A DNA stretch of 64,000 bases from Paragordius varius. Taxonomy: Eukaryota > Animalia > Nematomorpha. The position numbers and the translations under genes were made by a program. The notes under the pieces are model-generated. The model saw only the letters and a list, made by a program, of their open reading frames with translations, did no database searches and had not been told where the DNA came from. Location of the stretch: contig OZ176051.1 of the NCBI GenBank assembly GCA_964247055.1, forward strand, positions 8,122,001 to 8,186,000. The letters are read 5' to 3'. Of the stretch, positions 1,081 to 53,344 are shown in pieces; position 1 is the stretch's first letter; each line of letters opens with the position of its first letter.

Positions 1081-2103
1081 GAATTTAGCTGATGACACAA
1101 TAATATATTTTCAATATTGATATTTTGTTAAAATCCCTAATAAAATTTATGTTAATTAGTTGTACTCTAAATAAATAAATGCGTTTTAGCCACTTTGTTT
1201 CAACTATACAAAATATTTGTTGTATGACTAAAATATGATTACTATTCTTACATAGCCGACTCAAAAGAGCCATCAATTTTTTTATCTAAACAAATTTTAA
1301 AGTTTACTGTTGTAATTTAAGATATGATAATTATTTAAAAAGAAAACGGTTAGAAGCTTAAATTATTAATAAATTCATTAATTAGGTGAATGTCTAATTG
1401 ATGAATTGGAATAATTTTTATTAATAATCAACAACTTGAGCTTTTTCACAAAGTCCATAGATTGCCAACCATATAACCTTTATGGCAGACTAAAAGGCGG
1501 CGCAAAATATAAAACAGTGTATTATGGAAAAAAAATTACGTGACCAATTTAAGTAGTATGGCTAATTTTAACAGCACTTATAACAAGGTACATGACGACA
1601 TTTATAAATTAATAGTCTTACTACGGAAAAAAATTCCTAACCATATATTTAATTTGTGACAATTCAAATGACTAATGTAACTAACTCCTCATGATATGCC
1701 TGTTTATAGTAGATAACAGTCGCCACAATTCTTGAGGCGGGCATTTATATATATAAAAAAATGCTAATACAAAAATCGATATTCAAATTTAACTATAACT
1801 GAGAACTGTTAATATAACAGAGGAGAAGTATTCTTATCTTAGTTTTACAAGATAATTGGTTAAAATGAGTTCAAAAGTTCACAAGTTAAATTTTTACCAA
1901 TTAAGCTTCAAAATTGGTCGGTAACACACACAAAGTTTAAAACCGTAAAAAAGATAGGTCATCATCTGATTTGTACAAAAGATTAAAATATACTGAAAAC
2001 TAAAAACATACATTATTTCCAGTATAATGCCAAATATAATTTTTTCGTTAAAAATGTTATCATTAATCCAAACATAGTAAAAATGTAAATACTATAATCA
2101 TAC

Positions 2104-2977
2104 TTTTATTTAGCGTCCTTAAAACATTGATGAAATCTGTAATTGTCAACATGCCCACAAAACTTTGTGTCGTGCTGTCCCATAGGGGTGCGGCCCTTAC
2201 CCCGTTATAAACAAGGGCAAAAAACGCTTTTTTGACCGGGAGATTTGTGTCAAATATTATGAGTTTGCCGCTGGTGGGAATGAGATCATAACATGAATGC
2301 AGGCGCATAAAGTTTTGAATGATGGAATCGTCACGGGGGATCGCAAAAATTTCTTGAACCCCGGGGAGACCTGTTAAAAATTGTGGATCAGCAAAGGGAT
2401 CATCGGAGGCCCCTGTAGTTTGATGTCCACTCGAATATGGGGAATTTGGTTCCTCCAAACTGAATGGATCAAACGTTTTTAACAGTAACTCAGACGTGTC
2501 TAAATTAAACGGAGTTTCTGAGAAATGCGAAACACCCCCGGGGCTTTTGTAGGGTCTTTGTTCATTTTGAGGATGTTTTCGATCACTGGACGAATATATG
2601 GAATAATCGTCGGAAGTTGTTGAATGTTGATGTTTAAATCTGTCCTGTAATCGTGTTTTGATAGGCTGAGCAGCTCGTGAAAAATAGCTTTTGTGTTGAC
2701 TAGATGAGCCATGTATGGTTGCACTATTATTATAATACATGTGTTGACTATCAATGGAAACGGGTTTAACAGGAGTATTTTGCCGTTCAACGTGATGAAA
2801 GTGGGGAGATTTTTGTCTTTGAGCTGATGATGTTGTGGATAAATTCTGTTTTACAGGAGTATGACCGCTAGAGAGATGCGGTGATTGTTGTTGGGAAGAT
2901 GACACGGATTTGGCTGCTGGAGCTTTTTTCTTGTGTCCAATCTTCGGTGATAAATTTTTTGTAATGGAATAATCCAT
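2104..2977 (-). CDS. PRKAG: AMP-activated protein kinase gamma subunit (SNF4A-gamma/PRKAG-like), first visible coding exon; gene continues beyond the left edge
   Basis: ORF contains the CBS1 signature [65 protein letters not shown]. It is preceded by a ~215-aa S/Q/H/P-rich extension. A phase-1 donor (AAA A|gtatga) at 2103 ends the exon. No downstream exon was recognised in 1-2100. Confidence 0.93.
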
Positions 2978-3217
2978 TTTTCATATATTAAAAAAATATT
3001 AAATAGCGTAAACAATTGGATCTTTAAAATTTGGTAGTCAAGGTCATTAATGCACGCGACTGAAATTTTTATAAAACATAGGGATCGATGATGGCATAAA
3101 AACAATATGTTAATATATCTCCACATATTTTCAGGTGTTTTTATAATAAATTTAAATTATATAGTACACTACAGCATAAATAATATTTAATACTTAAATT
3201 TAAAATAATTAATTTAA

Positions 3218-4366
3218 CACTTCGATTCAAATTGGGATATCTAAATAACTCCACTACTAAATTTAAGTTAAGATTTTTAAAAAATCACTGAAGGAAACGG
3301 TCCCAATTTAAATATATGCTTCTATCCTAATAAAAATTATATAAATATGCTAAAAAATCTAAATAAAATTTAGTTTTGAAAAAAAAGTTTTATGTCAAAC
3401 TACTTCGACGCCATTTTTATTTTAAAAATTTTTTGCAAAATATCGTCTTCATTTAATTTTATGGGTAAAATAAAAGCTAATTTTTTATTTAAATTACATC
3501 TAACATTGATGGAAATAGAAAAAGCGGTTTATTTTGTATTTTTTAATTTAACCATTGTACACATGTAACGTTGACTAAATTTTTACCCTTCTGTTTTAGC
3601 TTAACACTTTGATTCGAATTGGGGTAACTAAATACCCCATACTAAATTTAAATTAAAATTTTTAAAAAACTACTAAAGGAAACGGTCCCCATTTAAATTT
3701 TTGCTTCTATCCTGATAAATATTATATAAATATGCCAAATTGTCTTGATAAAATTTTGTTTTGAGAAAAAAGTTCCATCTCAAACTACTTCGACGCCATT
3801 TTTATTTTACAAAAATTTTGCGAAATTGTCTTCATTTAATTTTAAGGGTAAAACTAAAGCTTATTTCTTATATAAATTACATCTAACATTGATATAAATA
3901 GAAAAAGCGGTTTATTTTGTATTATTTTTTAATTTTACAATTTGACACATGTCATGTTGACTAAATTTTTACCTTTCAGTTTTAGCTCAAAATAAGTAAT
4001 ATCAAGTATTTTTGAATAAAATTTTTCATGTATTTCGGTTTATTAATGTTATAGCAAAATTTTGCCATGGTTTCGATTGTTTTCATACTTTTTAAAGTAA
4101 TTGATTTTAAACAGGCCTGGGGTATCCAACTACCCCAATTTGAATCGAAGGACTAAAAAAATGTGTTGTATCCAAGTGTTAAAATAAGTAATATCAAGCA
4201 TTTTTGAATAAATTTTATATATTTCGGTTTATTAATGTTATATAAGTGCAAAATTTTGCCATGATTTCGATCCCTTCCATATTTTTAAAAGAATTTAATT
4301 TTAAACAGGCCTGGGGTATTTAACTGCCCCAAGAAAGGAATAAAATGAATGTGTTGTATCCAAGTG
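3218..4366 (+). mobile_element. TTAA MITE family 1 (piggyBac-like), outer copy interrupted by a second copy
   Basis: Starts TTAA|CACTTCGATTCAAATTGG and ends GTGTTGTATCCAAGTG at 4366 (right TSD decayed). Segments 3218-3600 and 4183-4366 are collinear with the intact copies. Confidence 0.85.
3605..4178 (+). mobile_element. TTAA MITE family 1, inner (nested) copy, 574 bp
   Basis: Flanked by TTAA at 3601-3604 and 4179-4182; ends CACTT...AAGTG; inserted at a TTAA inside the outer copy. Confidence 0.9.
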
Positions 4367-4559
4367 CTATAATCAAAAACGATTGATTTAACCTGGTGTA
4401 GTTTATATATCTAATATTCTAAGTTATTTTCATATCGACTCAGGTGGAAAAATTCCCATATAATTTTGGAAGGTAGAAATTAAAATTTACACAGTCTGAA
4501 TAAAGTTAGTATTATCCTGACGAAGAATATATCTGAAATCTCGTGGGTTGGTATGTTAA

Positions 4560-5010
4560 CACTTCATTACTCATTACCCTTTTTCTTTTTGGGGTAGTTT
4601 TATATCCCACACCTATTTGGACATTGTTATCTTGAATTAAATAAAAAAAGCTTATTTTACATTTTTGTGCCTTTTCTATTATAAAGACAGTTCAAAAACA
4701 CGATTGAAACAAACAGCTGATATTATAATCAAATATCAAGTTTTTGCTGGTAAATTTAGGAAGTTGTCTACATTTTCTACCCTAATATACATTCATTTGT
4801 CTGTTGCATTGGCGATTTAAAAAAAATAGAAGAAATGACGATAAAAAAGTTTGATCAAGATTTTTTTGAAATTTTACATTTTTTTAACACATTTATTGTA
4901 TAATGCGCTTAAAAGAGGAAAGCATTTTTAAATTCGGCTTAATACCTTAAATTATTTAAGATATTCATATTTCAAATGGCTCTTGTTAAAACTACAAAGA
5001 GGTAATGGTG
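4560..5010 (+). mobile_element. TTAA MITE family 2 copy
   Basis: TTAA|CACTTCATTAC...GGGGTAGTTTTATATCCCA at the left, ...TAAAACTAC...GGTAATGGTG at the right; body (CGATTGAAACAAACAGCTGA...TGTTGCATT...TTGTATAATGCGC) shared with other copies. Confidence 0.75.
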
Positions 5011-5194
5011 TTTTAAAAACAAAGGCAAAAACTTTGATCGACATTTCATGGGGTAACTATATTCCAAGTATATTAAAAATTTCATATATTAGAAAAATAT
5101 TGGAGTTGGGCCAAATTTAAAAATAATTATTGTAAAATTGTAAAAAAATCCTCATTTCAAACTTCTTGGCCATTTTTTTTCTTATTTTTCTCGG

Positions 5195-5615
5195 CACTTC
5201 ATTACCTTTTTTTGTCGTAGTTGGCATATTGGTGTAGTTTTATATCCCAGAGCTCAATCTTAATATAATTATTGTTTTGAAATTTACAAACATTGTTCTC
5301 ACGTATCAGATAAAATTAAAAATTGGACCCACGATTGAAACCAACAGCTAATATAAAAATCAAAATGTATCACATTTTGCTGGTAAAATGTGGCCTTAAA
5401 GCTTTTAAGGTTAATTATTAACATTATCCAACCATTTATACATTTATTTTCCTGTTGCATTAGTGATTTATAAAGGAAAACATGGCGGCGAAAAAGTTTT
5501 AGATAACAATTTATAAACAATACTACATTTTATGTAAAATTCTCCTAAAAGGTTAAAGAAACCATATTTTTAAATTTAGCCATTTTCGATTTTCAAATGG
5601 TTCTGGGATATAATA
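5195..5615 (+). mobile_element. TTAA MITE family 2 copy, right end eroded
   Basis: CACTTCATTACC...GTAGTTTTATATCCCA start and shared body; ends near CTGGGATATAA. Confidence 0.65.
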
Positions 5616-6488
5616 TTTTTCTGAAAAACACATTTTATCCGAGTTCTACCTTAATCATTATGATCCAAAATGATTCAAGGCACCAGAAAACATATCAAAA
5701 GCTAAATTTAATTTTCAATAAGTCAATTTTTTAGAGATGACCTTTTATATGTTATAATTGAGAAATTAATCCCGCAATCTTGAAATTTTTAAGGTTATAC
5801 GAAAACTAGACCATATTTGATAGCCTTATAAAAATTAAAATTTTATCAAAAAAAATTTTAACTTTTTAAGCATAGCTTTTGTATTTTAATAATATTTTTG
5901 TGAAGCATTTGGCATTCACGACCTAATTAAAATCAGTATATATATATATAATCAGTTTTTGGAGGAACATTGTCAAATAAAACGTGCAAAAATTACTGAA
6001 CTTACGATAAATATAATATATTTTATATTTCACGCGCAAAATAACTGATTGATTACTTGATTTTCGTAAAATCCCTTTGCCAAACATAAAAGTTGTCCGA
6101 TTATTAATTCTAAAATATAATAATGATGTTGGATATCAAATTATATTCTGTAATATCTTACTCCTCGTCGTTAAAGTCGCTTTCAAATATTACTACACAC
6201 TGAATTTTTTCTTTGTGATCAGCGCCCGAAATCAGGTATGGAGCCATTTATGAATTGATCAATAATGAATATATCTTATTGTAAATGAAATGACCAACTG
6301 ACAAACATTGCGATTAAATAATAAAAGAATTTAGACATAGATTAAATAAAAAATATTCCAAATTACTAGCAGTCATAGATTCTTAATATTAAATATTTCC
6401 CCCATCCTGTGTGACTTATTGAAAAGATTATAATTTCATAGTGGCCAATGTTTACACTTAATTGAACGGGAATTTTCAATATCGGCTT

Positions 6489-7560
6489 CTGGATGTAGTC
6501 ATGGTCTAGTTTAATAAAGACGTTAGCGAATGGGCAGGTTATTAATTTGGCACAGATGTCATTTTGTACAACCAAGTTGAGTCCGCCAAACTCTACATTT
6601 TATCAAGTAATTATGTCAAATTATATGCTTCGAAAGAATGGTATAGCTTTTCTTATTTCATCCGAAATGCTAGTGAAAGTCATCATTGGTTGGTAGAAAC
6701 ATATTAACATGGAACGATCAAAACCATGTAATATATGGTTTCAAATTTAGAGTTGTATTTTTGATGTGACAAAGAATGGGCGCTCTGGTAAAACAAAAAC
6801 TGCGAATACGATTAACTGCATGATGATTGCCCGAAATCAACGACAATTGTCAGATTACTAAATTAAAAAATCAATAAAGGTGTGTGAGCAATGGGAGAGA
6901 CTAATAACCTCTGTAAATGGATCCCACACAATTTGAATAACCAAAACAAAATATCTTGTGGGACTCTATTTCAATGTCACGAAAAAAAAACATTTTTGCA
7001 TCGAATCGTGATAGAAGCGGCTTTATTTTTTAAAATAAAAGCGGAAACCGTGGTTTTCACCTTGACAAGCGGTACATCAACACCAAATTAGTTGCTTTGC
7101 AAGAAAATCAATCTCTACGTCTGGTTGAACTATATATTGTGTATTATGAACCTTTGAAACCCCTTGAAGTCGTTAATACACAATCGCCAAAACATTCAAT
7201 TAAAACCTTGTATTTATCAAAAAATGACGGGAATGAGCTGAAAAACAAAGTGATTTTGCATTATGACAATACTTTGTCTCCCATAAACAAACGAGTGAAA
7301 GATAATTCTGAATCATTTCGATAAATATTTCTGCATCAGGCGCATTCTCATGACCTGAACTGATAGATTATTACCTCTTCATATGGATGGGGCCCATGTT
7401 CTCAAAGCATCCTTTCTATATCTTCGAAGACGTTGAAAAATGGCTTGACGAATGGTTTGCCGAAAGGATAATTAAGTTTTCTGGAATGTTTAAAAGCCAT
7501 TGAACAATATTTCGAATAAAATAATTGGTCAATTTTTCCGAAGACTATGATTGCACCTGG
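6489..7560 (+). mobile_element. Mos1-like mariner transposon relic (transposase pseudogene about 6613-7519)
   Basis: Frameshifted fragments: MSNY...ESHHWLVETY, KWIPHNL, FLHRIV, VYYEPLKP, KVILHYDN, FEDVEKWLDEWFA, YFE*. Right end ...GATTGCACCTGG|TA; degenerate left TIR at 6489 (13/19 match). Confidence 0.8.
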
Positions 7561-8847
7561 TATATATGATCAGTGTGGCATCGAATTATATTAAAAAAAT
7601 GTTTTGATAATATTCAGATGATATACAACCTCCGATATGATGCAATAGATCATGTTTATGTTGTTAATTTCAAGTCTAATATCCACTCAGACATTTTTAA
7701 GAAAAATTTGCAACTTAATATATACACATATATATAATTCTTATCGATTTTGAGGAAAACCTATTTCGATCCTAAAAGTTAAATTTTTTTCTGGCTCCTT
7801 CGAATATCTTCAGTATAAATATGCTTTACCCCAAAAGATCACGGTTAATGTAGCATGAAAATATGGCAATGATTTTAACATTTACCCATTTGACCCAATG
7901 TCGAATATAAATATATGGCGAATAGCGCTCAGTTTTTGGGTTCTCAAATCTTTAATATAAGTCCTGCTGGGCCAAAACGATGTTTGATATTTTTAAGCAT
8001 ATTCTTCATATATTTAATCAATGACTTTTTTGACATAAAATCAAGACTGTTAAATTCAACAATTATTACGAGGTTTTATTTTTCAATATATTTTTGTCAA
8101 AAAGACGATATAAATCCCCACTTAATGTATGCCATGTTTAAATTTATTTAATTTATTGAATATAGCATATAATTGGTTTTTGGTTGAAATATTTTCAAAT
8201 ATGAGAATTTATACACAGTGTGTACATATATCTAATTATGAAATATATATATATATATATGTATATACGGATTACATATATCATTGGTTACAAAAAATAT
8301 TAATATTGGGAGATAATACCCTTTTCTTACTTTACCGATGGTGGCGGATGACATAAAAATTAGATAATAATAAATTATTATAAAACGAATTTAGTAAAAA
8401 CAATTTAAAATGAGATTCTACTCAATAAAATTCATAAAATTTGATTTTGATCAAACGAAAGGCACAAAAATAATAAACGTAGTAGTAATGTATAATTATT
8501 TAGCAGAAGAATAAAAATAATGATCCCACATAAAAACAAAAATCATGAGTTAAAAACTATGAGATTTTACCTATATTTATATGTATCATTTACCAATCTA
8601 AATTGCACTAATTATAAAATAAACTGGGGTATACAACCAAAAAATTGTACAGGGTTTTTATTGTAGCCTCTTGCTGCGTGCAAGTATTATTTTTGGGTGA
8701 AAATACATCAATTTTTTTTAACGTGGGCATAATCTGGCATACGAACTTTAGAAATTATATGATTCATACATATATGTGTCACCATTAACCGTAATAATCG
8801 ACAAAATCGGTACATGTAATTTGTAAATTTTGCAAAATAGAGATATT

Positions 8848-30822
<21,975 letters not shown>

Positions 30823-32139: not shown

Positions 32140-32328
32140 ATGGTTTCCTTTATTTTATCAAAATTTTTTTTAAATGGGTATAAATATTTGGTAAAATATG
32201 GAAAAAACAAGAGCTTAAATTTTATTTTTTGATGAATGTGCTATTGTTAATATCATAAAGCTCTCGTTTTTTCCATTCTTAAATATTTATACCCATTTAA
32301 AAAAAATAAAATAAAGGATACATGACTG
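32140..32328. mobile_element. Eroded copy of the CAGTCATGTATC palindromic MITE
   Basis: TTTATTTTATCAAAA...AAATGGGTATAAATATTTGG...ATACCCATTTAA...GGATACATGACTG, collinear with 43346-43561. Confidence 0.65.
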
Positions 32329-33132
32329 TGATGCAATCAAAATTTTCTTCAACTAATTGAACATTATAAAATTATGGTATCATATTTAAATTGTGGAAAA
32401 TTGATACAGTATGAGTAAGTAATTGCTAGAAAGTTATTAATTATTGCCAATAGGATATGTATACAACAAAGGGCAGTATTATTGGCTTATAGTTATTTTT
32501 TCCACTTTTTACTATTAACCAATAATCTTTGCTGGATATGCTATTTGGCAATAATTAATAACTCTCTAGCAATATATACTTACCCATACTGTAATATTAA
32601 ATCTAAATTAAAGGTTAATATCATCTAATTTTGTTTAGCTACATTAGATTGTGGCAATGATAAATGACCATTATTAATGAGTTCATAAGAGATCAAACCA
32701 CCGTTATTTTTGACCGGTCAATTAACATAAACGTACCTCTTTATCTCGATATACAATTTGCAATCAACCAAAAAAATAAGGAATGCAGTATAGGTAATCA
32801 TCGCTAATTTTTCATATTAGAGTATGAGTAAGTATACATTGCTTGGTTAATTATTGCCAGAAGCAAAGTGATAAAAAATTTGCCTATATTTTTTCGTTTT
32901 TTACTAATATTTTAATTATGATCTTTGCTGCATAAAAGTAGGAATGTATTTTTACTCATCTGTAAAATGGCTGTTTAATGTATAAGTTTTATGGGGTGAT
33001 AAAAAAATTTTTTCAATCCAACATAATTACCACCTTTTTTCGTATATTTTATTGACTACTGAGAAGGAATTTTATTCAGAAAAGAATCAGCTGTTAATTT
33101 TATCTTTATGTCATTCACTTTATAGTGTTTAA

Positions 33133-33704
33133 CACTTGGATACAACACATTCATTTTAGTCCTTCGATTCAAATTGGGGTAGTTAAATACCCCAGGCCTG
33201 TTTAAAATAAAATTCTCTAAAAATATGGAAGGAATCGAAACCATGGCAAAATTTTGCACTTATATAACATCAATAAACCGAAATATATAAATAATTTTAT
33301 TCAAAAATACTTGATATTACTTATTTTAAGCTAAAACCGAAAGGTAAAAATTTAGTCAACTTGACATATGTGCAATGGTAAAATTAAGAAATAATACAAA
33401 ATAAACTACTTTTTCTATTTCTATCAAAAGATGTAATTTGAATAAAAAATTAGCTTTAAGTTTACCCTTAAAATTAATTGTAAACGATATTTTTCAAAAA
33501 TTTTGTAAAAAATGGCGTCGAAGTAGTTTGACATGGAACTTTTTTTTTCAAAACAAAATTTTAATTAAATATTTTGGCATATTTATATAATTTTAATTAG
33601 GATAGAAGCATAAATTTAAATTAAGACCGTTTCCTTCAGTAGTTTTTTAAAAATCCAAAAAATTTAGTCTGGGGTATTTAGATACCCCAATTTGAATCGA
33701 AGTG
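33133..33704 (-). mobile_element. TTAA MITE family 1, intact copy, 572 bp
   Basis: TTAA at 33129-33132 and 33705-33708; reverse complement is collinear with 3605-4178. Confidence 0.9.
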
Positions 33705-34190
33705 TTAATTAAATATAACAAGCATTATTTTTTCAATTGTACTCCGAAATAATTCTGTCTTTTTATTTCTATAATATAGTTAGTTATCTTAAACATATAA
33801 CGTTCATATTGTTGGTAAAAGGTTTGTACGTTTTCATTATACTGTTAATTATATACTGTAATGGAAAGTTTGTTCGCTTTATGGAAGTTTTATTGGTGGA
33901 CAGCTTATTAAATTAAAATTTTTATTAATTCATTCAATTTTCTATCGCATAGGCCCAATTAAAATACCCATAAATCCAGTGTATTTATAGAATTTATAAT
34001 TTTAGATAATTATGTTGTTATTAATAGCTTCTTATACCCACATATTCCCACTTTGCGCAATTATTTTTTGGACGATTAAGTTAGCACAGGGGCTTTTCAA
34101 AACTCAAAACATATATATATATGTAGTACACATACGGTGGTATGATGTAAGTTAAAGAAAGGAAATAATTTGGATTATGTGTAATTAGTA

Positions 34191-42968: not shown

Positions 42969-45900
42969 TTATACAGGTGTATAGGCCCTAAAAGCCAAAA
43001 AAATAGTATCTTGATCTGCAACATGAGAATTATTTGAATTTCCTTCGATATGGGAGGACGAATCGCTGATAGAATCAAATTCCCGGGCTTCTTGACCAGT
43101 CGTAGGCGAGACGAGAATTCTTAAACTGACATATTCACCCGCATTCAAAAATACCACGGCCCCTGTGCGTAATTGATGCATGGGTGCTAAGGTTGCATGT
43201 CCATTCCTAATTGCATAAAACAATCAATATACAATATGTATTGAAATTATAAAGACAGACGGTTTATTTTATGAGGGGACCCAAATTTTTTGATGCTTTT
43301 GTAGTATTTACAAGATTTACAGTTGACAAAAATTTGAGTGTATTACAGTCATGTATCTTTTATTTTATCAAAAATTTATTTTTTTCGTTAAATGGGTATA
43401 AATATTTGGTAAAGAATGGAAAACACAAGAGATTTTTGCTAATTCTTATATTTTTTGATGAATATGTATTGTTAATACCATAGAGCTCTTATTTTTCCAT
43501 TCTTTAATACCCATTTAACGAAAGAAAATAAATTTTTGATAAAATAAGGGATACATGACTGCACTAATTTATATCTCGATCATTTATTTCACGACCTTAA
43601 GAACAAGTTAATTCAACTTTGCCCTTTGTTTTATTGTACGGGCAGTCATAAAAAATATTTATAGGTCATCTGTCATACGACCGCAACAATAATACCGGTT
43701 AAAGTTGCAAGAAAAAAAAATCAAATCGCTTTTTATTTAGTCGATTACACTAGACAACAAATTTTAACTTTTTTTAACTGCCATTCTTGTAAATTTAAAA
43801 TTTATTTATTAAAGTACATAATTAGTATATCTGAAAAGAAAATTGGTCTTACATGGAATTTTTTCATATTAGAGTTTATCGATAATTTTTGGCCCCGATT
43901 TTACATTAAACTCAAAATTTCGAAAATTAAAAGTTTTAGATATGAAGCCATGTATTTTATATCATTCGAAAGAGCGCAAAAAACTGCATCTTTTAAATGG
44001 TAGTAAGTCATTAAATCCATCGGATGTAAAAGTTATTTGGATTTAAATGGTCAAAATTTTCAATCCTTAAATAAGTCAAGAATTTTCGCAGACAAACTAA
44101 TTTGAAAATCATATAAATTATTTTAATATAATTATTAGGGTTATATTAATATTTAATTTAAAAAAATGTTTGGAAAAGCTTTTGGTTTGCTTTTTTAATA
44201 AAAATTATTATTATCATAAATATTTTACCTAGTGGATACTAAAATGCATAGTTATAACTGTAAATTTATTACATAATGGCTATAGAAGATCAAAAATACC
44301 TTAAACTTTGTTTTTTTCTTTAAATTTTCGAAATTATCAGCCTTGTAAAGAAAATAAATTAATATTGATGAGATGGTAATTTTTAAAAAACAAAAAACTT
44401 AAAAATGGCTGTTTTGAGTGACATAAAAGAAATAAAAAATGTTTTAATCAAAAAAAACTTTCTTGTGTTATCTTTTTTGGACATTCATCTCCATTTAAAC
44501 AAAGTTTGAGCTATTTTCATCCATTAGTTTTAAAAATATAATAATTAAAAAAATGCTCTCGCTTCGCGCGTTTGTCACTCTTTGTGTCCAATTATAACTG
44601 TCGATGTAATACATATTAGTATACATTTTATAGAGTTTTTAATACTCTTTCGAATGATATATTACAAATGGGCATTACTTGTATATTTTTTAAGAAAAAG
44701 TAAAATTTTGATAAAGAGGGCGCATAATCAAAAAAATCAAATTATACGAAATTCTTCCAACGAATAATTTTTATTTCAGATTTACTGTTAAAATGATATT
44801 AAATATCAAATAATGCAAAAAACTCGAGTGGCAGAAAAATTTGTTGTCTAGTGTTATGATAGAGAGAAGGCGTCAGCTAAACATGCTTTGATATAAATAA
44901 AGGTAATTCTATACGCAAGACTAGGGTTGTGCATTTGACTGCTTTTTCAAAAAAATCCGGTCAGACCCAGTCAGACCATGGTCATGACCACTTTTTACAT
45001 AAGTTAATATCATGCAATATTGGATTGTCAAAATAATGTTCAAACGAGACTTCCCTTTTACTAATGTCGTGTTTTTTCTTAAAAGTCTGTATTATACATT
45101 TTTTTGATATTTATTATTTACAAATATTTTCAATAAAATTTATACAAGAATATTGTTTTCAAATAAATTTCCACATGTTTATGGCCTCTGAATCTCCAAA
45201 TACATAGCTTTTAATACTGGATATTTCAAATAAAATTTTACCTAGTTATACACTTTCTTTTATCACTGAAATATCTAATTATAAAATGTTTTTCATTTTA
45301 TTGGTTCACATATATGGAATAATTGCATATTTTGCAAAGTGCTTGATTGTTTTGTTTTTCGAAATAACTGGATATGCTTAAATGCTAATGTTATGAGGAT
45401 GCATGTTTAACAATTTTATATTGTTAAATAAGCATATTAAAAATTAATATTTTTTTAAATATATAAAAAAAACAATAAACTCTTACTATCTCTCTTTCAA
45501 AAAAATTCACCAGCAATTTTTTAAACAACAGCTGTTTTTTAAATGACCATGGTCAAAAAAAATAGTCACTGACCTGGTCATGACCCGGTCAATTGACCGG
45601 GTCATGACTTGGTCAGCACAACCCTACGCAAGACATATTCAAATATATTTTTTAAAGTCCTTAAAAACAAATTAAAAAAAATCGCAATTTCGCATAGATC
45701 AACCAAATAATTGCGATTACGCGGTAAAATAAATTTTAATTTTTATTTAATTTAACATATATTTATATGCATGATTGTTTCATCAAATGAAACCTTTTAT
45801 AAGCTCTATAATAAATGTTTTTTTATAGCGGAAGTCGAGTATAAAATAGTGAGAATAAATTAAATACCCATTTTTAAGATATTCCGGGGGCAGGTTATAA

Positions 45901-48900
45901 TTGGCTTCACCTTTGATAATGATGATGATACTTGCGCTCTGGATAGTTGGTAAAACTATATCCTTAAACAATTCCTTTCCCGCATCCCCGAGTTTTAGCT
46001 AACATATAAATTTGATTCAAGTTATAAAAAAATAAAAAGTAGTTTTTTTCGATTTCCTTGCAATATATTGATGAATTCGAAACTTACGATCAAAATTTAG
46101 TATGGAGATAAAAAGGATGATTATTACATACAATATATATATATATGTAAGTATTGTGCTTAGATTAAGGAAAAATAAAAATTAATTAGCATCCCGATCT
46201 TAAAATAAAATCAGGAAACAGTATATACCATTTACACTTCGGAATTCCCTCTAACAATTTAAATTTACCCTAAAATAAATTATGTTTTGTTTATGATTAA
46301 ATATTACCTATATTTTTTTTATATTTTTAATAAAATTCTGTTTGTAGTTAAAAGAATACTAAAAAATTGTAATAAAACTAAACAATAAAGATATAATTCT
46401 TATTATAATGAGTTATATTAGCCGATAACACATAATTTATTTTTAGAGTGAATTTGAATTGTAAATGGCATAAAATATTATATAAATAATACGTTAAAAG
46501 CAAATTGAAAGATCATCTGCATTAATATCTCAATAAAATTTGCCCACACTTTAAGAGTTATATACTAATAAACAATAGTTTTAGTCACACACAAAAAAAA
46601 CATGACAAAACTCAAGCAAATCAAATTGTACTCTTTCTTTTCACATAAAAATAATGCACATAACCAATTACACAAACACACCTCAATCCTTTGTACAGCG
46701 AATTCATCTACGGGCGGTTTGTATTCGTAGAAAAGATTAGACGTTACCAAAGAATTCGCCGAACCTATTATTGTGTTGTTGGTAATGATTGGACAAGGTT
46801 CCAAAATTTTTGCAGAAGCCGGTCCCATATCATACGTTAACATATCGCACAACACTGGAACATCTTTAAATTTTGGGGTTAGACCAGCACGGACAACATT
46901 ATCCGAACATGCCATACACTCCATACAATCTTTTATTACAATATTATTAAGGTTTTTAGAGAATAAATTTAATAAATATATAGATATAGACAAAAAATAA
47001 AAAGAAAGTGACAAAGATAACTAGTACCACAATATGTTTTAACTATATATTTTATCGATAAAGTTATTCTTATTAATTTTAGAGACTAATTTAAAACTGA
47101 AAATTTAATTAAAATATCTTCCATATGATCGATATAACATTAATGTGTTAAAAATGTGCTATAAAGACATTAGAGTAGCGCATGGGTAGAAAACAACAAA
47201 TGATTGAAATTACATTTTTTCCTATTTTTAAAACATTAATATAATTTAATTAGGACATGATTTCTTTCATATCATACGCTATTGTAATACCAATTTGCTA
47301 ACATTAATGTGAATTTATTAATATTAATGTGCATACCTCGTAAGAGTTAAACTATAATATGAAATATCCAATTTAGAAAATAACTTATGCTAATGATAAA
47401 AAATTAACCAACTTTATCTAAATCCTATTGATTAAAGATGAATATAATTTGTATTCATATAAGTCAATAAATTACTAATTGATGTATTTTATTAAAAATC
47501 CATATAAAATCTAATAAATTATTATTGATTTTGCTGTATAACCATATGCATGATCAAAATAATATTTAAATAGATACAGAGATATAATTAAAACATAAAC
47601 ATTTACAGACAATGTTAATTTTGCCCGAATACAGTTTTTAATTATCTTTTTATTAAAACTTTAATATAAAATATATAAACATATTTTTATTAAAAATATT
47701 ACCTCCTTGTAGATAGGCATGAGGTTCATCAGGACCCAAAAATATTGCCTCTCCCGGTTTCAAATTTATTACATTAAGGAATAAAATAGAAAGACAACCA
47801 ATATCGCCCGGGAAAAACTGGTTACATCGAACAATTATGTCAAACATCATTTTGTCACATGTTAAACTTCGACGCCTAATATCTGGAAAAAATATATTTC
47901 AAATTTGTAAATCGTCATAAAATGCAATGTTTATTAAGGGGGTATATTAAAATGGTTAAAGTAATAAAAGCATCTTTTAGGAACTGATTCATACAAGTGT
48001 TTTGTTTTTTTAATGCTATAGTAGGTCCTCGCATATTTACAACAGAGAAAATAAAATAAGGGCATAATATGTATTAAATCATTTAAAATTATTTATTAGC
48101 AAATTATGATACCATTTGTAAGTTTAATATAAAAAATTTCTAAATTAAAACATTAGCATATGTTATTAGTCCAAAAATCATAAGCAGAAAAAATTGGAAA
48201 TGATAACTTAAGAGACAAAGACTAGAAAATATAAATTAAATAAAACAATCAATAATGGTTTACAACACCATCATAATATAAGTTTTAAAAAGCATCCGTA
48301 TTTCTCCATTATATCACGTAACATTTTAAATTATCGACATATTTTCTATGTTATATCTATTGCATTTGCTAGAAACTAGGCCTTAAAACTCATTTAATTA
48401 ATTAAGAATGAAAAAACGAAGATACATACATAAAATTTCACACAATAAAATGATTTGTTTTGTGTCTCAAAATAAATGACACATTTTTTAGACAGAGTTT
48501 GTCATAATTTAAAACAAAGAAACCACAAGGTCAAATTATTTTAGTAAGAGTCATTTAAACATGTTTTTACTGTTACCAATCAATGTATAATATATTACGT
48601 CAATTGTTAAAAAAACCAAAAATTTGCAAAAATATATATTATCAATAAATTTGTATTATAGTTACCATTTTAAAAAGAACAAAAGCTAACCAAAAAACTT
48701 TTTATTATATTGTTTAAAACCAAAAAATTCTTTATTAGTAATGTCCTGTAACCTAAAAAGATTTTTTTTTCTGGAAAAGCAAAAAATACAAAACCTTTGT
48801 TTGAGATGATAGTTATAACGGCTTGAACACATTTAGCAACTTGATCGGTAGGGCTATTCATAAAAGCTGTAAAACATGTCTTGAGACTTTCCTTAATTTG

Positions 48901-50039
48901 GCTTGTGTTAGGGTTCGGATCTATCGAAGTTTCAAGTCCCGCTAATTTATCATAAAATGTTTGACAAAGTTCTGTTCCTATTAGAGTTTCCACATCTGGG
49001 AACGCTAAATTATATTTAAAAAAACAGATAAAAAATAAATATTCGCGTATATTTTGGTATTTGTAATAACAAATTTATAAAAAAATGTTTGATGCGTAAA
49101 ATTTATTAACCTATTTAAAATTGATTTCGTAAAGCTGATGGAACACAACATTTTAATTGTGTTCCTTTTATAAATATTATATAAAATGACAAATTTTTAT
49201 GGCAATTAAATGTAGCATTTTAATTTGTTTAGACCCGAAAAAAATAGACATTTTTAAATTTTTTGTTTTGCATAAAGAAGTAATTTAAAAATTAATCTGA
49301 AATTTTATAATCTTACTCAAATTTTATAAATATTATTGAGCTGTTCAAAAAAATCTTTATTTTATTTGGCTGTATAATTTTCGGTATAAATTGAATTAAT
49401 TACCTTTTAAATTATGCATAATTTCATGCGGTGGCCGAAATCCACACAAGGCTTGAAACGGTGTTAATGCGATTGCGGTTTCAGGCTTATGATTCGAGTC
49501 CGGATAATGAAAGGGATCCCGATTATGTAATATCTCAGCTAAAACCTAAAATATAATTTAGAGTGAATATTCAAAGAGTATAATAAAACGGATACAAGAT
49601 TTATATTTATATATTTTTAAATAATAAACCTTATTTGGATGTGCTTGAATTGATAAGGGTTTCGCTATGGACAAGACTTTAAACAAAAATGGTAAATTTC
49701 CATTCTCTTTTGTCAAAAATTTTGCCACAACTTTGTGTCCCAATATTTTAGCTGGACTCGACTCGATGTACTCAGATAATAAAATTTTAACTGGTGGTTG
49801 ATCTGGTTGCTTATGGCCCAATATTTCGGAAGGACCCTTGGAATGAGTTCCCATCCATAACTTTAATTAAAACTAAAAACTACTTCGGCATATGGCTTAT
49901 CCTTTTCTATAGAATACAAACTTTCATTAAAGTTATGGGCTAATTTTGCAACTTCACTATCAAATCCATGTTTACCCCATTCATAATGTTGAATGACGCA
50001 TTTAAGATAAAAAACTAAACATTAAAAAAACTTACCCAT
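42969..50039 (-). CDS. MPI: Mannose-6-phosphate isomerase (type I phosphomannose isomerase), 9 coding exons, about 504 aa
   Basis: Exons (minus): 50036-50039, 49884-50014, 49630-49860, 49404-49545, 48795-49004, 47703-47882, 46682-46929, 45868-45998, 42969-43206. All are GT-AG and in phase (1515 nt). Motifs: [112 protein letters not shown]. The 4-nt first exon is the least certain part. Confidence 0.95.
43346..43561. mobile_element. Near-palindromic 216-bp Tc1/mariner-type MITE (second, eroded copy at about 32140-32328)
   Basis: TA|CAGTCATGTATC...GATACATGACTG with inverted arms of about 60 bp (...CGTTAAATGGGTAT / ATACCCATTTAACG...). Confidence 0.7.
43870..44590. mobile_element. Possible DINE/Helentron-like non-autonomous element
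   Basis: Only motif-level resemblance (ATATCATTCGAAAG; GCTCTCGCTTCGCGCG near 44556); boundaries are guessed. Confidence 0.25.
44922..45626. mobile_element. Non-autonomous hAT (Ac-type TAGGG end) MITE with subterminal TGACC/GGTCA arrays, in MPI intron 8
   Basis: 11-bp TIR TAGGGTTGTGC / GCACAACCCTA; exact 8-bp TSD CGCAAGAC (44914-44921, 45627-45634). Confidence 0.9.
49861..49883 (-). other. 23-nt spliceosomal intron (MPI intron 2)
   Basis: GCC GAA|gtagtttttagttttaattaaag|TTA TGG ATG splits the conserved PYAE|LWMGTH motif. Length is not 3n, and the upstream and downstream coding frames both hit stops inside it. Confidence 0.9.
50015..50035 (-). other. Candidate 21-nt spliceosomal intron (MPI intron 1)
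   Basis: ATG G|gtaagtttttttaatgtttag|TT TTT TAT CTT AAA TGC gives [16 protein letters not shown]. Perfect GTAAGT donor, TTTAG acceptor and an in-frame TAA inside. Confidence 0.7.
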
Positions 50040-50121
50040 GCGAAAGATGCTAGGTCAAAAAATATGACTAAAGGCATCTATCTATATCACCTGGTTTTAT
50101 AAATTAGCATATATCCATTAA

Positions 50122-50653
50122 CACTTGGATACAACACACTCATTTTATCAAATTGGGGTAGTTGAATACCCCAGGCCTGTTTAAAATCAAATACTTTAAA
50201 AATTATGGAAGGAATCGAAACCATGACAAAATTTTGCACTTATCTAGCAATAATAAACCGAAATATATAAAAAATACTTGATATTACTTATTTTGAGCTA
50301 AAACTGAAAGGCAAAAATTTAGTCAATGTGACATGTGATACAAAATAAACCGCTTTTCCTATTTCTATCAATGTTAAATGTAATTTATATAATAAATAGG
50401 CTTTAGTTTTACCCTTAAAATTAAATGAAGACGATATTTTGCAAAATTTTTGCAAAGTAAAAATGGCGTCGAAGTAGGATGGAACTTTTTTTTTCAAATC
50501 AAAATTTTATCAAAATATTTTGGCATATTTATATAATATTTATCAGGATAGAAGCATGAATTTAAATTGGGACCGTTTCCTTCAGTAGTTTTTTAAAAAT
50601 TTTAATTTAAATTTAGTCTGGGGTACTTAGATACCCCAATTCGAATCAAAGTG
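50122..50653 (-). mobile_element. TTAA MITE family 1, copy 82 bp upstream of the MPI ATG, 532 bp
   Basis: TTAA at 50118-50121 and 50654-50657; same termini and body as the 33133-33704 copy, with small deletions. Confidence 0.9.
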
Positions 50654-51020
50654 TTAATTTAAAATAAAACTACAGTTTTATTTGTTTGAGTGCTTAAATT
50701 TATAAATAGTGATTATTCTTCAAACAGGATTTTGAATTTACCCTTGAATATTTATAAATAAGCAGAATATTATATTTAAAGCAACAAAACATATGTAATT
50801 AAATTCCAATTAGATTTTATCTAAATGTACCTAACCGTACATTTGCTAGTGTCTGGATAAAATTAAACCAAATATATCAGTGACACACTCCTCTAAATTG
50901 TATTTTTAGGCATGATGGAAACGGTATAAATCACTTTATCTATATGATTCGATAATGCTGAACTTTTCTATCGCGCCCGAATTTTAACTAATACGATTAA
51001 AATATTGGTTCGCCATAAAC

Positions 51021-53344
51021 CAGTGGTACTCACCAAAAAAAATTGACGGGCCAAATATAATATATTTTTTTTCGATGGCCATGAACCTTAAATTGACAAA
51101 TATTTCATGCTATTTGACACATATGTGCATGTTAATACTCTACACGATGATTTTTTTGGGGATCGCATGTAAATCCAAATAAAAACTCGTTTTGCACCGT
51201 TTACTTTAAAAAATTAAAATATTTTGATAACAATATTTATTTTGATATTAACCAATAATTTTTGAGAAAATTTGGTTTCGTCTGATGACAGGCCAATTTT
51301 AATGCGCCGTCCATATGATCATCGGTTAAACGATTTTTGTATGTATTCTTAATATACTTCATTTTTGAATGTGCACACGTGTAAATTGAGGGAAAAACAG
51401 TTAGGATAACTTGAGCAAATTTTTTTATATTTTCATATATTTGGCACATCTTGCCAAAACTCTACATATCTTTCTTCTCTTCTCCTTGATCATTGGAGTC
51501 ATTTCTAAAATATACGTATTCTTCAATGATATGCGCCTGTCATAACCGAAATGCTCAAGTTACTTAATATTGGATATATCCATATGCCGTGGATTTTCAA
51601 CGAGTTTAATGCAATTTTTAATATTTTTAATTCTTATCTGAATTTTACATAAGATAAAAATGTTAAATGATTGTCTATTGATTATCTCCGCGGTAAATTC
51701 GATATTTTTTTCATGAATCGTTTTAAGTGTTGGAAAATATAGGAGTGTTTTATTTATAAAATCTTGTTTAATTTTTCTTCAAAAGCAAATATTTGATTAA
51801 AAATTGGGTTATTATTTTGCCTCCTTGAAGACTTGTATTAAAAATACTTAGTTTATAAATAATGTCGCAAAGGTAGGCTCTCGTCAAACTTTCTGTTATC
51901 TTTTATATATAGAATTTAATGGCTTAAAATAAAATATCTATTTAATATTTTGCTAAGGCTTAGCCATCTTGTACAAAATAATATTATCAAACTCACGGTG
52001 GGTATCTTTCAGGTGGTTTTTGAATTTACAGCGGTTGAATTCTATGCCACGGATGTGGTGAACTATATCCAACCGTTTCATTACTGAATTGAGTGATTCA
52101 TCTTTTACACGCAAAACCAAGTTTTGCTGATGAATAAAGCAGTGAAAGGATAAATTATTTTGCAAATTATATTTGTTTTTCAAAAGAAAAATACCTTTGT
52201 TCTTTCCAATCATAGAGGGACATCCATGTCAGATCGAAACCAACTTTTTTATAGATTTACTATCGAAAAAAGTGCTAATTATTTCGAGAAAATCACTTTT
52301 TTTCTAGGTAATATTCATTAATACAAATTTTAAATATTGCTTGTTGATTATGTTGTCGTTGGTGTTGAACTAATATGGTGGAATCAATAGCAATCCTAAA
52401 ATATTTGCAGTTTTTCAAAGCCAATGCATTGTTAAAAATATATTTAGACATAGTTGAAGCTTTTCAATTTGCCTCATGATTTGATCTTTCTTATGAAATT
52501 TATCAAATTAAATATGCAACCATTTATTAGACATTCTTTTATTTGTTGGGGATCAGTAAACCGTTTCTTATTTTTTCCTAAAATATAGCAAACTTCATAC
52601 GAAGCTACAGTTTTCCTGAAAGAAAGCTATGGACATAATAGATTCTTTCTGGTATAATTCCTTAATGTTTTTTTTGTTACTTTCCTCATGATTTTCTGGT
52701 AATTTATAAGTAAATTGTAAAACGTCTTCCAATATTGTATTTATTTATAATTATATTGTCCTTATATATAAGGCTGCAAGTAACAACATTTTTATTTAAA
52801 ACGACAAAGAATTTTTCTTCCCATTCTTTTTTAAACGGTTTTCATAGGATAATTTACGTTTTTTAGCATTAGATGCCAACCTTTGAAACGAATTTTAAGT
52901 ATTATGTTTATTTTTTCAAAAAATAGGAATTATGTGAATTATGCTATAAAAAAAGAGGTCGAAATTTGATGATGTTGATTTGAAAAATATGTTATGGGAA
53001 TGAGTTGTAAAAAATGATGCAGCATATGTATATGCAAGTTTGGGTGAACTTGCTTAAATACAAAAAAGGAATACAATTCAAAATAGAAGAGAAAATAGAA
53101 TACAGAAACAGAAACAATGTGTGCCAAAATTTTGAAATCATTTTATAATGAAGGAAAATTTTTCTACATTTCTAATTGGGTAAAAAATAAAGGTTACCAA
53201 AATTACATCTAAAGAAAATAAATTAATATTAAAAATTCGTTTAAGTGTATTTTAAAAATTCATCAATAAACAAATAATATAAGTATCAATATAGTCATAG
53301 GGCCATTTTAAAGCACTCTTAGGGCCGCGGTTTGAATACCATTG
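51021..53344 (-). mobile_element. hAT transposon of the Buster/SPIN (GTF2IRD2-like) clade, full-length but with a decayed transposase
   Basis: TIRs CAGTGGTACTCA / TGAATACCATTG; exact 8-bp TSD CCATAAAC (51013-51020, 53345-53352), matching the nnnTAnnn Buster preference. Fragments: KKRKLSYENR..KEWEEKFF, FHCFIHQQNL, HIRGIEFN, SKMKYIKNTYKNRLTDDHM. Confidence 0.9.

Follow-up and report, generated by a model that had tools for sequence, protein, structure and literature searches.

A candidate 23-nt spliceosomal intron at a conserved position in the MPI gene of a horsehair worm

How short can an intron be and still be removed by an animal spliceosome? The question is raised by the sugar-metabolism gene MPI (mannose-6-phosphate isomerase, or phosphomannose isomerase) of the horsehair worm Paragordius varius, which lies in a window of 64,000 nucleotides (nt) of contig OZ176051.1 (positions 8,122,001 to 8,186,000; coordinates below are those of this window), and in which the conserved protein motif PYAE-LWMGTH is split on the minus strand by 23 nt. 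For a long time, some 30 nt or more was taken as the minimum intron of the animal spliceosome, and animals were held to be without introns under about 30 bp until two lineages of parasites with compact genomes were added: among 51 genomes, introns below 30 bp were found in myxobolid Myxozoa and Dicyema japonicum only, and more cases were predicted (PMC13644364, Mol Biol Evol, September 2026). Nematomorpha are unmentioned in the main text of that paper. Here, we argue that the 23 nt at 49883..49861, intron 2 of the gene, are very probably a genuine and obligatory U2-type GT-AG spliceosomal intron, the excision of which we infer. In the most plausible reading, it is an intron of ancient bilaterian origin that would have shrunk to 23 nt, next to an intron 1 that would have shrunk to 21 nt.

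The MPI reading frame and its two shortest introns

In minus-strand order, the sequence reads GAT AAG CCA TAT GCC GAA (to 49884), then gtagtttttagttttaattaaag (49883..49861), then TTA TGG ATG GGA ACT CAT (from 49860). The intervening 23 nt, a number that is not a multiple of 3, have GT first and AG last (gtag...aaag). Their G+C fraction of 0.17 matches the introns of the MPI gene and not its exons; they contain zero C, which at ~17% G+C is not significant by itself. If they are kept, the frame continues as EVVFSFN and then meets TAA as the seventh codon. The exons on either side cover positions 1-41 (45 amino acids (aa) upstream) and 42-104 (78 aa downstream) of the Pfam domain PF20511 (PMI_typeI_cat), such that joining exons 2 and 3 without intron 2 neither loses nor gains a residue (PF20511 positions 41 and 42 become adjacent). 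The downstream 78-aa piece also aligns with the Candida albicans phosphomannose isomerase structure 1PMI from residue 48. The initial annotation of this DNA had described a motif split by a 23-nt, C-free GT...AG segment on the minus strand, which is right to the base, and had placed a TAA within seven codons on retention, as is the case. It had further held that a functional MPI needs the segment removed; a conserved, intact MPI is indeed readable only without exactly these 23 nt.

We built the gene model on the minus strand with the MPI protein of another horsehair worm, Gordionus, as a guide. The model is complete, with nine exons and 504 codons from ATG to stop and zero internal stops, and all eight introns are GT-AG (Table 1). 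At the composition of the MPI exons, 504 open codons would arise by chance with a probability of ~6e-16. Retention of intron 1 would be no less disruptive than that of intron 2, giving TAA at codon 6. Relative to the Gordionus coding sequence, there are 166, 93 and 282 differences at codon positions 1, 2 and 3, respectively, with proportions of nonsynonymous and synonymous differences of 0.275 (pN) and 0.82 (pS, saturated). The match to PMI_typeI_cat identifies a type I phosphomannose isomerase in which the QAHP, HKPE and PHAY motifs, which we take to be zinc ligands of the enzyme, are all kept. On these grounds the MPI gene of this window looks functional.

Intron 2 has the features of a U2-type intron: GT/AG ends, a frame and protein that are restored by its removal, and a position and phase shared with orthologues. 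The 5' splice sites are GTAGTT in intron 2 and GTAAGT in intron 1, and each of the two introns holds a single match to the branch-site pattern yUnAy, namely TTAAT. The initial annotation had expected this motif to put the branch A at about -7 from the 3' end, in agreement with the candidate A at 49867. The first AG beyond TTAAT coincides with the 3' splice site in both introns. The long MPI introns contain TTAAT at a frequency of 0.0074 per nt, and two such placements have a probability of ~0.003, a post hoc figure with n=2 in AT-rich DNA; the placement of TTAAT as the branch site of introns 1 and 2 is suggestive only. The position of TTAAT and the 5' sites fit ordinary U2-type chemistry with a short distance between the 5' splice site and the branch. 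Both introns would likely be spliced by intron definition, with U1 and U6 pairing to GUAGUU (GUAAGU in intron 1), U2 pairing to the single UUAAU, the branch A lying 16 nt past the 5' G and 6-7 nt ahead of the 3' end, and the first AG past the branch serving as acceptor. This would imply a spliceosome that tolerates ~13-16 nt from 5' splice site to branch, as in myxobolids, dicyemids and ciliates; unlike in those systems, the same transcript would also carry introns of 84-2661 nt. Assignment to the U12 type was considered and rejected: neither an RTATCCTT 5' site nor a TCCTTAAC-type branch is present, and the 5' end of intron 2 is GTAGTTTT, with zero C.

Intron positions shared with other animals

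Queried with exon 3, a set of 1.84 billion representative proteins returned as its top match the annotated MPI (P0001) of Gordionus sp. m RMFG-2023 (Gordionus montsenyensis; Nematomorpha, Parachordodidae), with 78% identity over the exon compared with 59% for the next best match. Over the whole protein, the MPI of the window and P0001 share 60.6% identity, which places the window in a species other than this Gordionus. When P0001 was aligned exactly, with splicing, to the locus that encodes it (L001; GCA_954871325.2, OX940783.2), the exons came out at 4, 131, 237, 142... nt and the introns at 48, 41, 157, 207, 1517, 685 and 2650 nt. Spliced alignments were also made for the annotated MPI of Antedon mediterranea (a crinoid), Menidia menidia (a fish) and Cephus cinctus (a sawfly), and the five proteins were then aligned.

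The first seven MPI introns of the window occupy the same positions, with identical phases, in Gordionus, Antedon and Menidia. Both of the tiny introns are included (Table 1), whereas Cephus is without either of them, which we scored as loss. Because the gap in the reading frame shares its alignment column and phase with an intron in three other animals, its coincidence with an intron position is far beyond chance. Judging from this alignment, a phase-0 intron at the YAE/LWMG boundary would already have been present in the bilaterian ancestor. The initial annotation had given vertebrate MPI a phase-0 intron at this position and proposed an alignment of orthologous intron positions; this is true for the fish, and the alignment shows the same column and phase in the crinoid and in Gordionus.

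The Gordionus counterpart of intron 2 is the closest comparison available, sharing the YAE/LWMG boundary, phase 0, GT-AG ends, the 131-nt flanking exon and the same seven intron positions within the gene. It differs in length (41 versus 23 nt), and the introns are without recognisable sequence similarity. Intron length in Gordionus MPI also increases from 5' to 3', and the polarity of short 5' and long 3' introns would therefore be older than the extreme shortening. A tblastx comparison of the Gordionus locus (the gene with 3 kilobases (kb) of flank on each side) with the window matched the MPI exons alone and is uninformative on synteny.

Table 1. Features of the MPI gene in the window, with the corresponding introns of other animals
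Feature	Coordinates	Strand	Length (nt)	Phase	Remarks
Exon 1, coding part	50036..50039	minus	4		ATG G; same in Gordionus
Intron 1	50015..50035	minus	21	1	GTAAGT...AG; directly after ATG-G
TTAAT in intron 1	50021..50025	minus			only yUnAy match; candidate branch A at 50022, -8 from 3' end
Exon 2	49884..50014	minus	131		equal to Gordionus exon; carries YEWGK motif
Intron 2	49861..49883	minus	23	0	GT-AG; between E45 and L46 (PYAE/LWMGTH)
TTAAT in intron 2	49866..49870	minus			only yUnAy match; candidate branch A at 49867 (intron position 17), -7 from 3' end
Exon 3	49630..49860	minus	231		LWMGTH...SIQAHPNK, with putative zinc-ligand motif QAHP
Intron 3	49546..49629	minus	84	0	
Exon 4	49404..49545	minus	142		equal to Gordionus exon
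Exon 5	48795..49004	minus			intron 4 (399 nt) upstream
Exon 6	47703..47882	minus			intron 5 (912 nt) upstream
Exon 7	46682..46929	minus			intron 6 (773 nt) upstream
Exon 8	45868..45998	minus			intron 7 (683 nt) upstream
Intron 8	43207..45867	minus	2661	2	
Exon 9 and stop codon	42969..43206	minus			intron 8 upstream
Gordionus counterpart of intron 1	L001 3005-3052		48	1	
Gordionus counterpart of intron 2	L001 3184-3224		41	0	
Intron one base after start codon, by species			21 / 48 / 452 / 674	1	window / Gordionus / Antedon / Menidia
Intron at YAE/LWMG, by species			23 / 41 / 294 / 1176	0	window / Gordionus / Antedon / Menidia

At the other end of the gene, intron 8 interrupts a region that in Gordionus, Antedon, Menidia and Cephus forms one undivided last exon; presumably it was gained as an intron in this lineage, or was inserted and is now removed by splicing. 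Within it lies a palindrome resembling a miniature inverted-repeat transposable element at 43341-43566, with a copy 11 kb away at 32143-32354, as well as a 48-nt palindrome of the perfect type at 45569-45616. The C-terminal domain encoded by the last exon carries a 23-residue S/N-rich insertion that is absent in Gordionus and the other animals compared.

Alternative explanations for the 23 nt

Several points weigh against a spliceosomal intron of this length. The 23 nt are the length in the assembly, which is the sole source for it, and the argument from TTAAT is post hoc, with two instances in very AT-rich sequence. RNA or cDNA of the species across the junction of 49884 to 49860 was not found in protein sets or metagenome contigs. 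With full-length Gordionus MPI, its first 170 residues and exon 3 of the window as queries (together covering lengths of 43-849 aa), a set of 5.8 billion proteins held nothing above 57% identity to the query used besides Gordionus; exact-product look-up of two open reading frames (ORFs) of the window gave no record, and a pattern of the exon ends separated by a gap of 0-30 nt had no match in metagenome contigs. For MPI, the genome and RNA of this species seem to be absent from the 5.8-billion-protein index. Finally, the whole window was scanned for GT..AG segments (15-70 nt) that, once taken out, would connect two open frames of 30 codons or more each; length by length, candidates were as numerous in a reversed-sequence control, and those of 20-30 nt showed no excess. 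The 64-kb window alone therefore does not establish a size class, an open-frame flank scan being too noisy in 27% G+C DNA to reveal one from 64 kb.

The alternative that survives best, although improbable, is an assembly artefact: the true intron would be longer (e.g. ~40 nt as in Gordionus) and collapsed in AT-rich low complexity, or its length would be altered by indel errors. Its dependence on the assembly lends this idea some substance, as does the internal near-repeat of the AT-rich intron (tagttttt / tagtttta). A collapse or indel would, however, have had to keep both the GT and the AG and to restore the frame exactly, no tandem repeat is called at intron 2, and the neighbouring intron 1, separated from it by the 131 nt of exon 2, measures 21 nt.

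A decaying pseudogene, with an intron that is partly deleted and unspliced and a functional MPI elsewhere, would account for the failure to find a protein or transcript of the species in the databases searched. We regard this as very unlikely. The 504 codons are open although stops are frequent in this genome, the substitutions relative to Gordionus are coding-like, the catalytic motifs are kept, and GT-AG is retained in eight of eight introns. In addition, no second MPI copy is present within the 64-kb window.

Removal by means other than the spliceosome has very little to recommend it. XBP1-like introns measure 23-26 nt, and the similar length of intron 2 makes cytoplasmic splicing of the IRE1 type conceivable; DNA elimination of an element akin to the internal eliminated sequences (IES) and translational bypass belong to the same group of ideas. 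However, the twin hairpins expected of an IRE1/XBP1-type substrate are absent (the junction region folds with a minimum free energy of -11 kcal/mol, z = +1.1, no better than shuffles), and CNGNNG is missing at the 3' junction, which has no C. IES-like elimination is at odds with boundaries that are GT/AG and not TA/TA. Against the group as a whole stands the fact that ordinary spliceosomal introns occupy the orthologous site in other animals.

Equally slight is the chance that the 23 nt stay in the transcript and that translation of a shorter protein begins at the ATG in LW-M-GTH, two codons past intron 2 (ORF 49854..49558 onward), since the 131-nt exon 2 is open, conserved with Gordionus including YEWGK and matched to PF20511 positions 1-41, as is to be expected only of an exon that is read in one frame with exon 3.

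Tiny introns in a repeat-bearing setting

A spliceosomal intron 2 would be an unusually short form of an ancient intron, and such introns appear to be unpublished for Nematomorpha; the searchable literature, which did not include the work of Cunha et al. (2023) on nematomorph genomes, yielded nothing on intron length in hairworms. The closest animal parallels are the introns of myxobolids and Dicyema japonicum, which like MPI introns 1 and 2 are GT-AG introns below 30 nt at conserved positions, with weak GTa...AG motifs, A residues shortly upstream of the AG and next to no polypyrimidine tract (PMC13644364). The differences lie in the setting. In those parasites the median intron is 22-27 nt and the genomes are small and compacted (PMC13644364), whereas in this member of the Ecdysozoa (Nematomorpha) only the two 5'-most of the eight MPI introns are tiny, within a gene-poor, repeat-bearing window. 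Nor are short introns the typical (median) ones here, as they are in a compacted genome, in that six of the eight measure 84-2661 nt, as judged from one gene.

Introns of about 25 nt are known from Paramecium, and those of the Bigelowiella nucleomorph measure 18-21 nt. Like the hairworm introns, those of ciliates and nucleomorphs are spliceosomal GT-AG introns (15-30 nt) with the branch A near the 3' end; these systems are unicellular, however, and nearly all of their introns are tiny, whereas hairworm MPI mixes tiny and kilobase introns in one transcript. Stentor has introns of 15-16 nt (cited in PMC13644364). The initial annotation had named ciliates, nucleomorphs, microsporidia and dicyemids as the main holders of such short introns, a list that was incomplete and to which the myxobolid Myxozoa have to be added (PMC13644364).

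For the 5' polarity, the nearest parallel is the flatworm Schistosoma mansoni, a member of a different lineage. Its small introns form a class of ~30-40 nt, longer than the 21-23 nt of the hairworm. They likewise cluster where genes begin, at the 5' end, larger introns following downstream, and transcript assemblers overlooked them (PMC3254664).

At this locus, the tiny introns do lie in a setting that bears repeats and is not compact. The window has a G+C content of 24-30% and contains MPI (7 kb), a Meis/homothorax gene (~17 kb) and little else that is recognisable. An interspersed repeat family of ~550-600 bp is represented at 50118-50667, 3594-4369 and 33129-33718 by copies that are 81-83% identical, and the first of these (~550 bp) reaches to within ~80 bp of the MPI start codon on its upstream side. 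With these interspersed repeats and MPI introns of up to 2661 nt, the locus is not compact, in keeping with the genome rich in transposable elements and not compact that was initially proposed. For comparison, the genome preprint of Gordionus montsenyensis (the Montseny horsehair worm) gives 26.9% G+C and 63.8% repeats; introns are not discussed there.

We consider it likely that horsehair worms, or at least this species, are a third independent animal lineage that routinely splices introns below 30 nt, and the first to do so in a large, repeat-rich and non-compact genome, with tiny introns found at the 5' ends of genes only, in transcripts that also contain introns of kilobase length. If this is true, a class of 21-23-nt introns in a repeat-rich ecdysozoan with kilobase introns would mean that extreme shortening is possible without genome compaction. 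Since the introns of Gordionus at the same sites are 41-48 nt long, the shortest intron that the spliceosome can handle would also have become about half as long within Nematomorpha, and the two species would form a close pair for tracing the spliceosomal change responsible, or what sets the lower limit. There may be practical implications as well. Introns of 21-23 nt fall at or below the minimum length that aligners and gene finders accept by default. Genes like MPI can then be mis-annotated as broken or missing, and we conjecture that this could inflate reports of gene loss and contribute to low BUSCO scores in Nematomorpha.

Elsewhere in the window, an Rfam scan gave zero matches, and a 91-aa open frame at 51956-52228 on the minus strand (FHCFIHQQNLVLRV) resembles by eye a remnant of a hAT-type transposase, with no Pfam match at E<=0.01. 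The Meis/homothorax introns that were inspected in the window measure ~60-330 nt and include no further micro-intron, the 5' end of the gene lying outside the inspected part. This TALE homeobox gene spans ~2066-18758 on the minus strand, with its Meis_PKNOX_N domain at 18480-18758 and 17366-17806, homeodomain exons near 10755-11009, 10346-10423 and 10150, and long N/Q/S-rich low-complexity exons between the domains.
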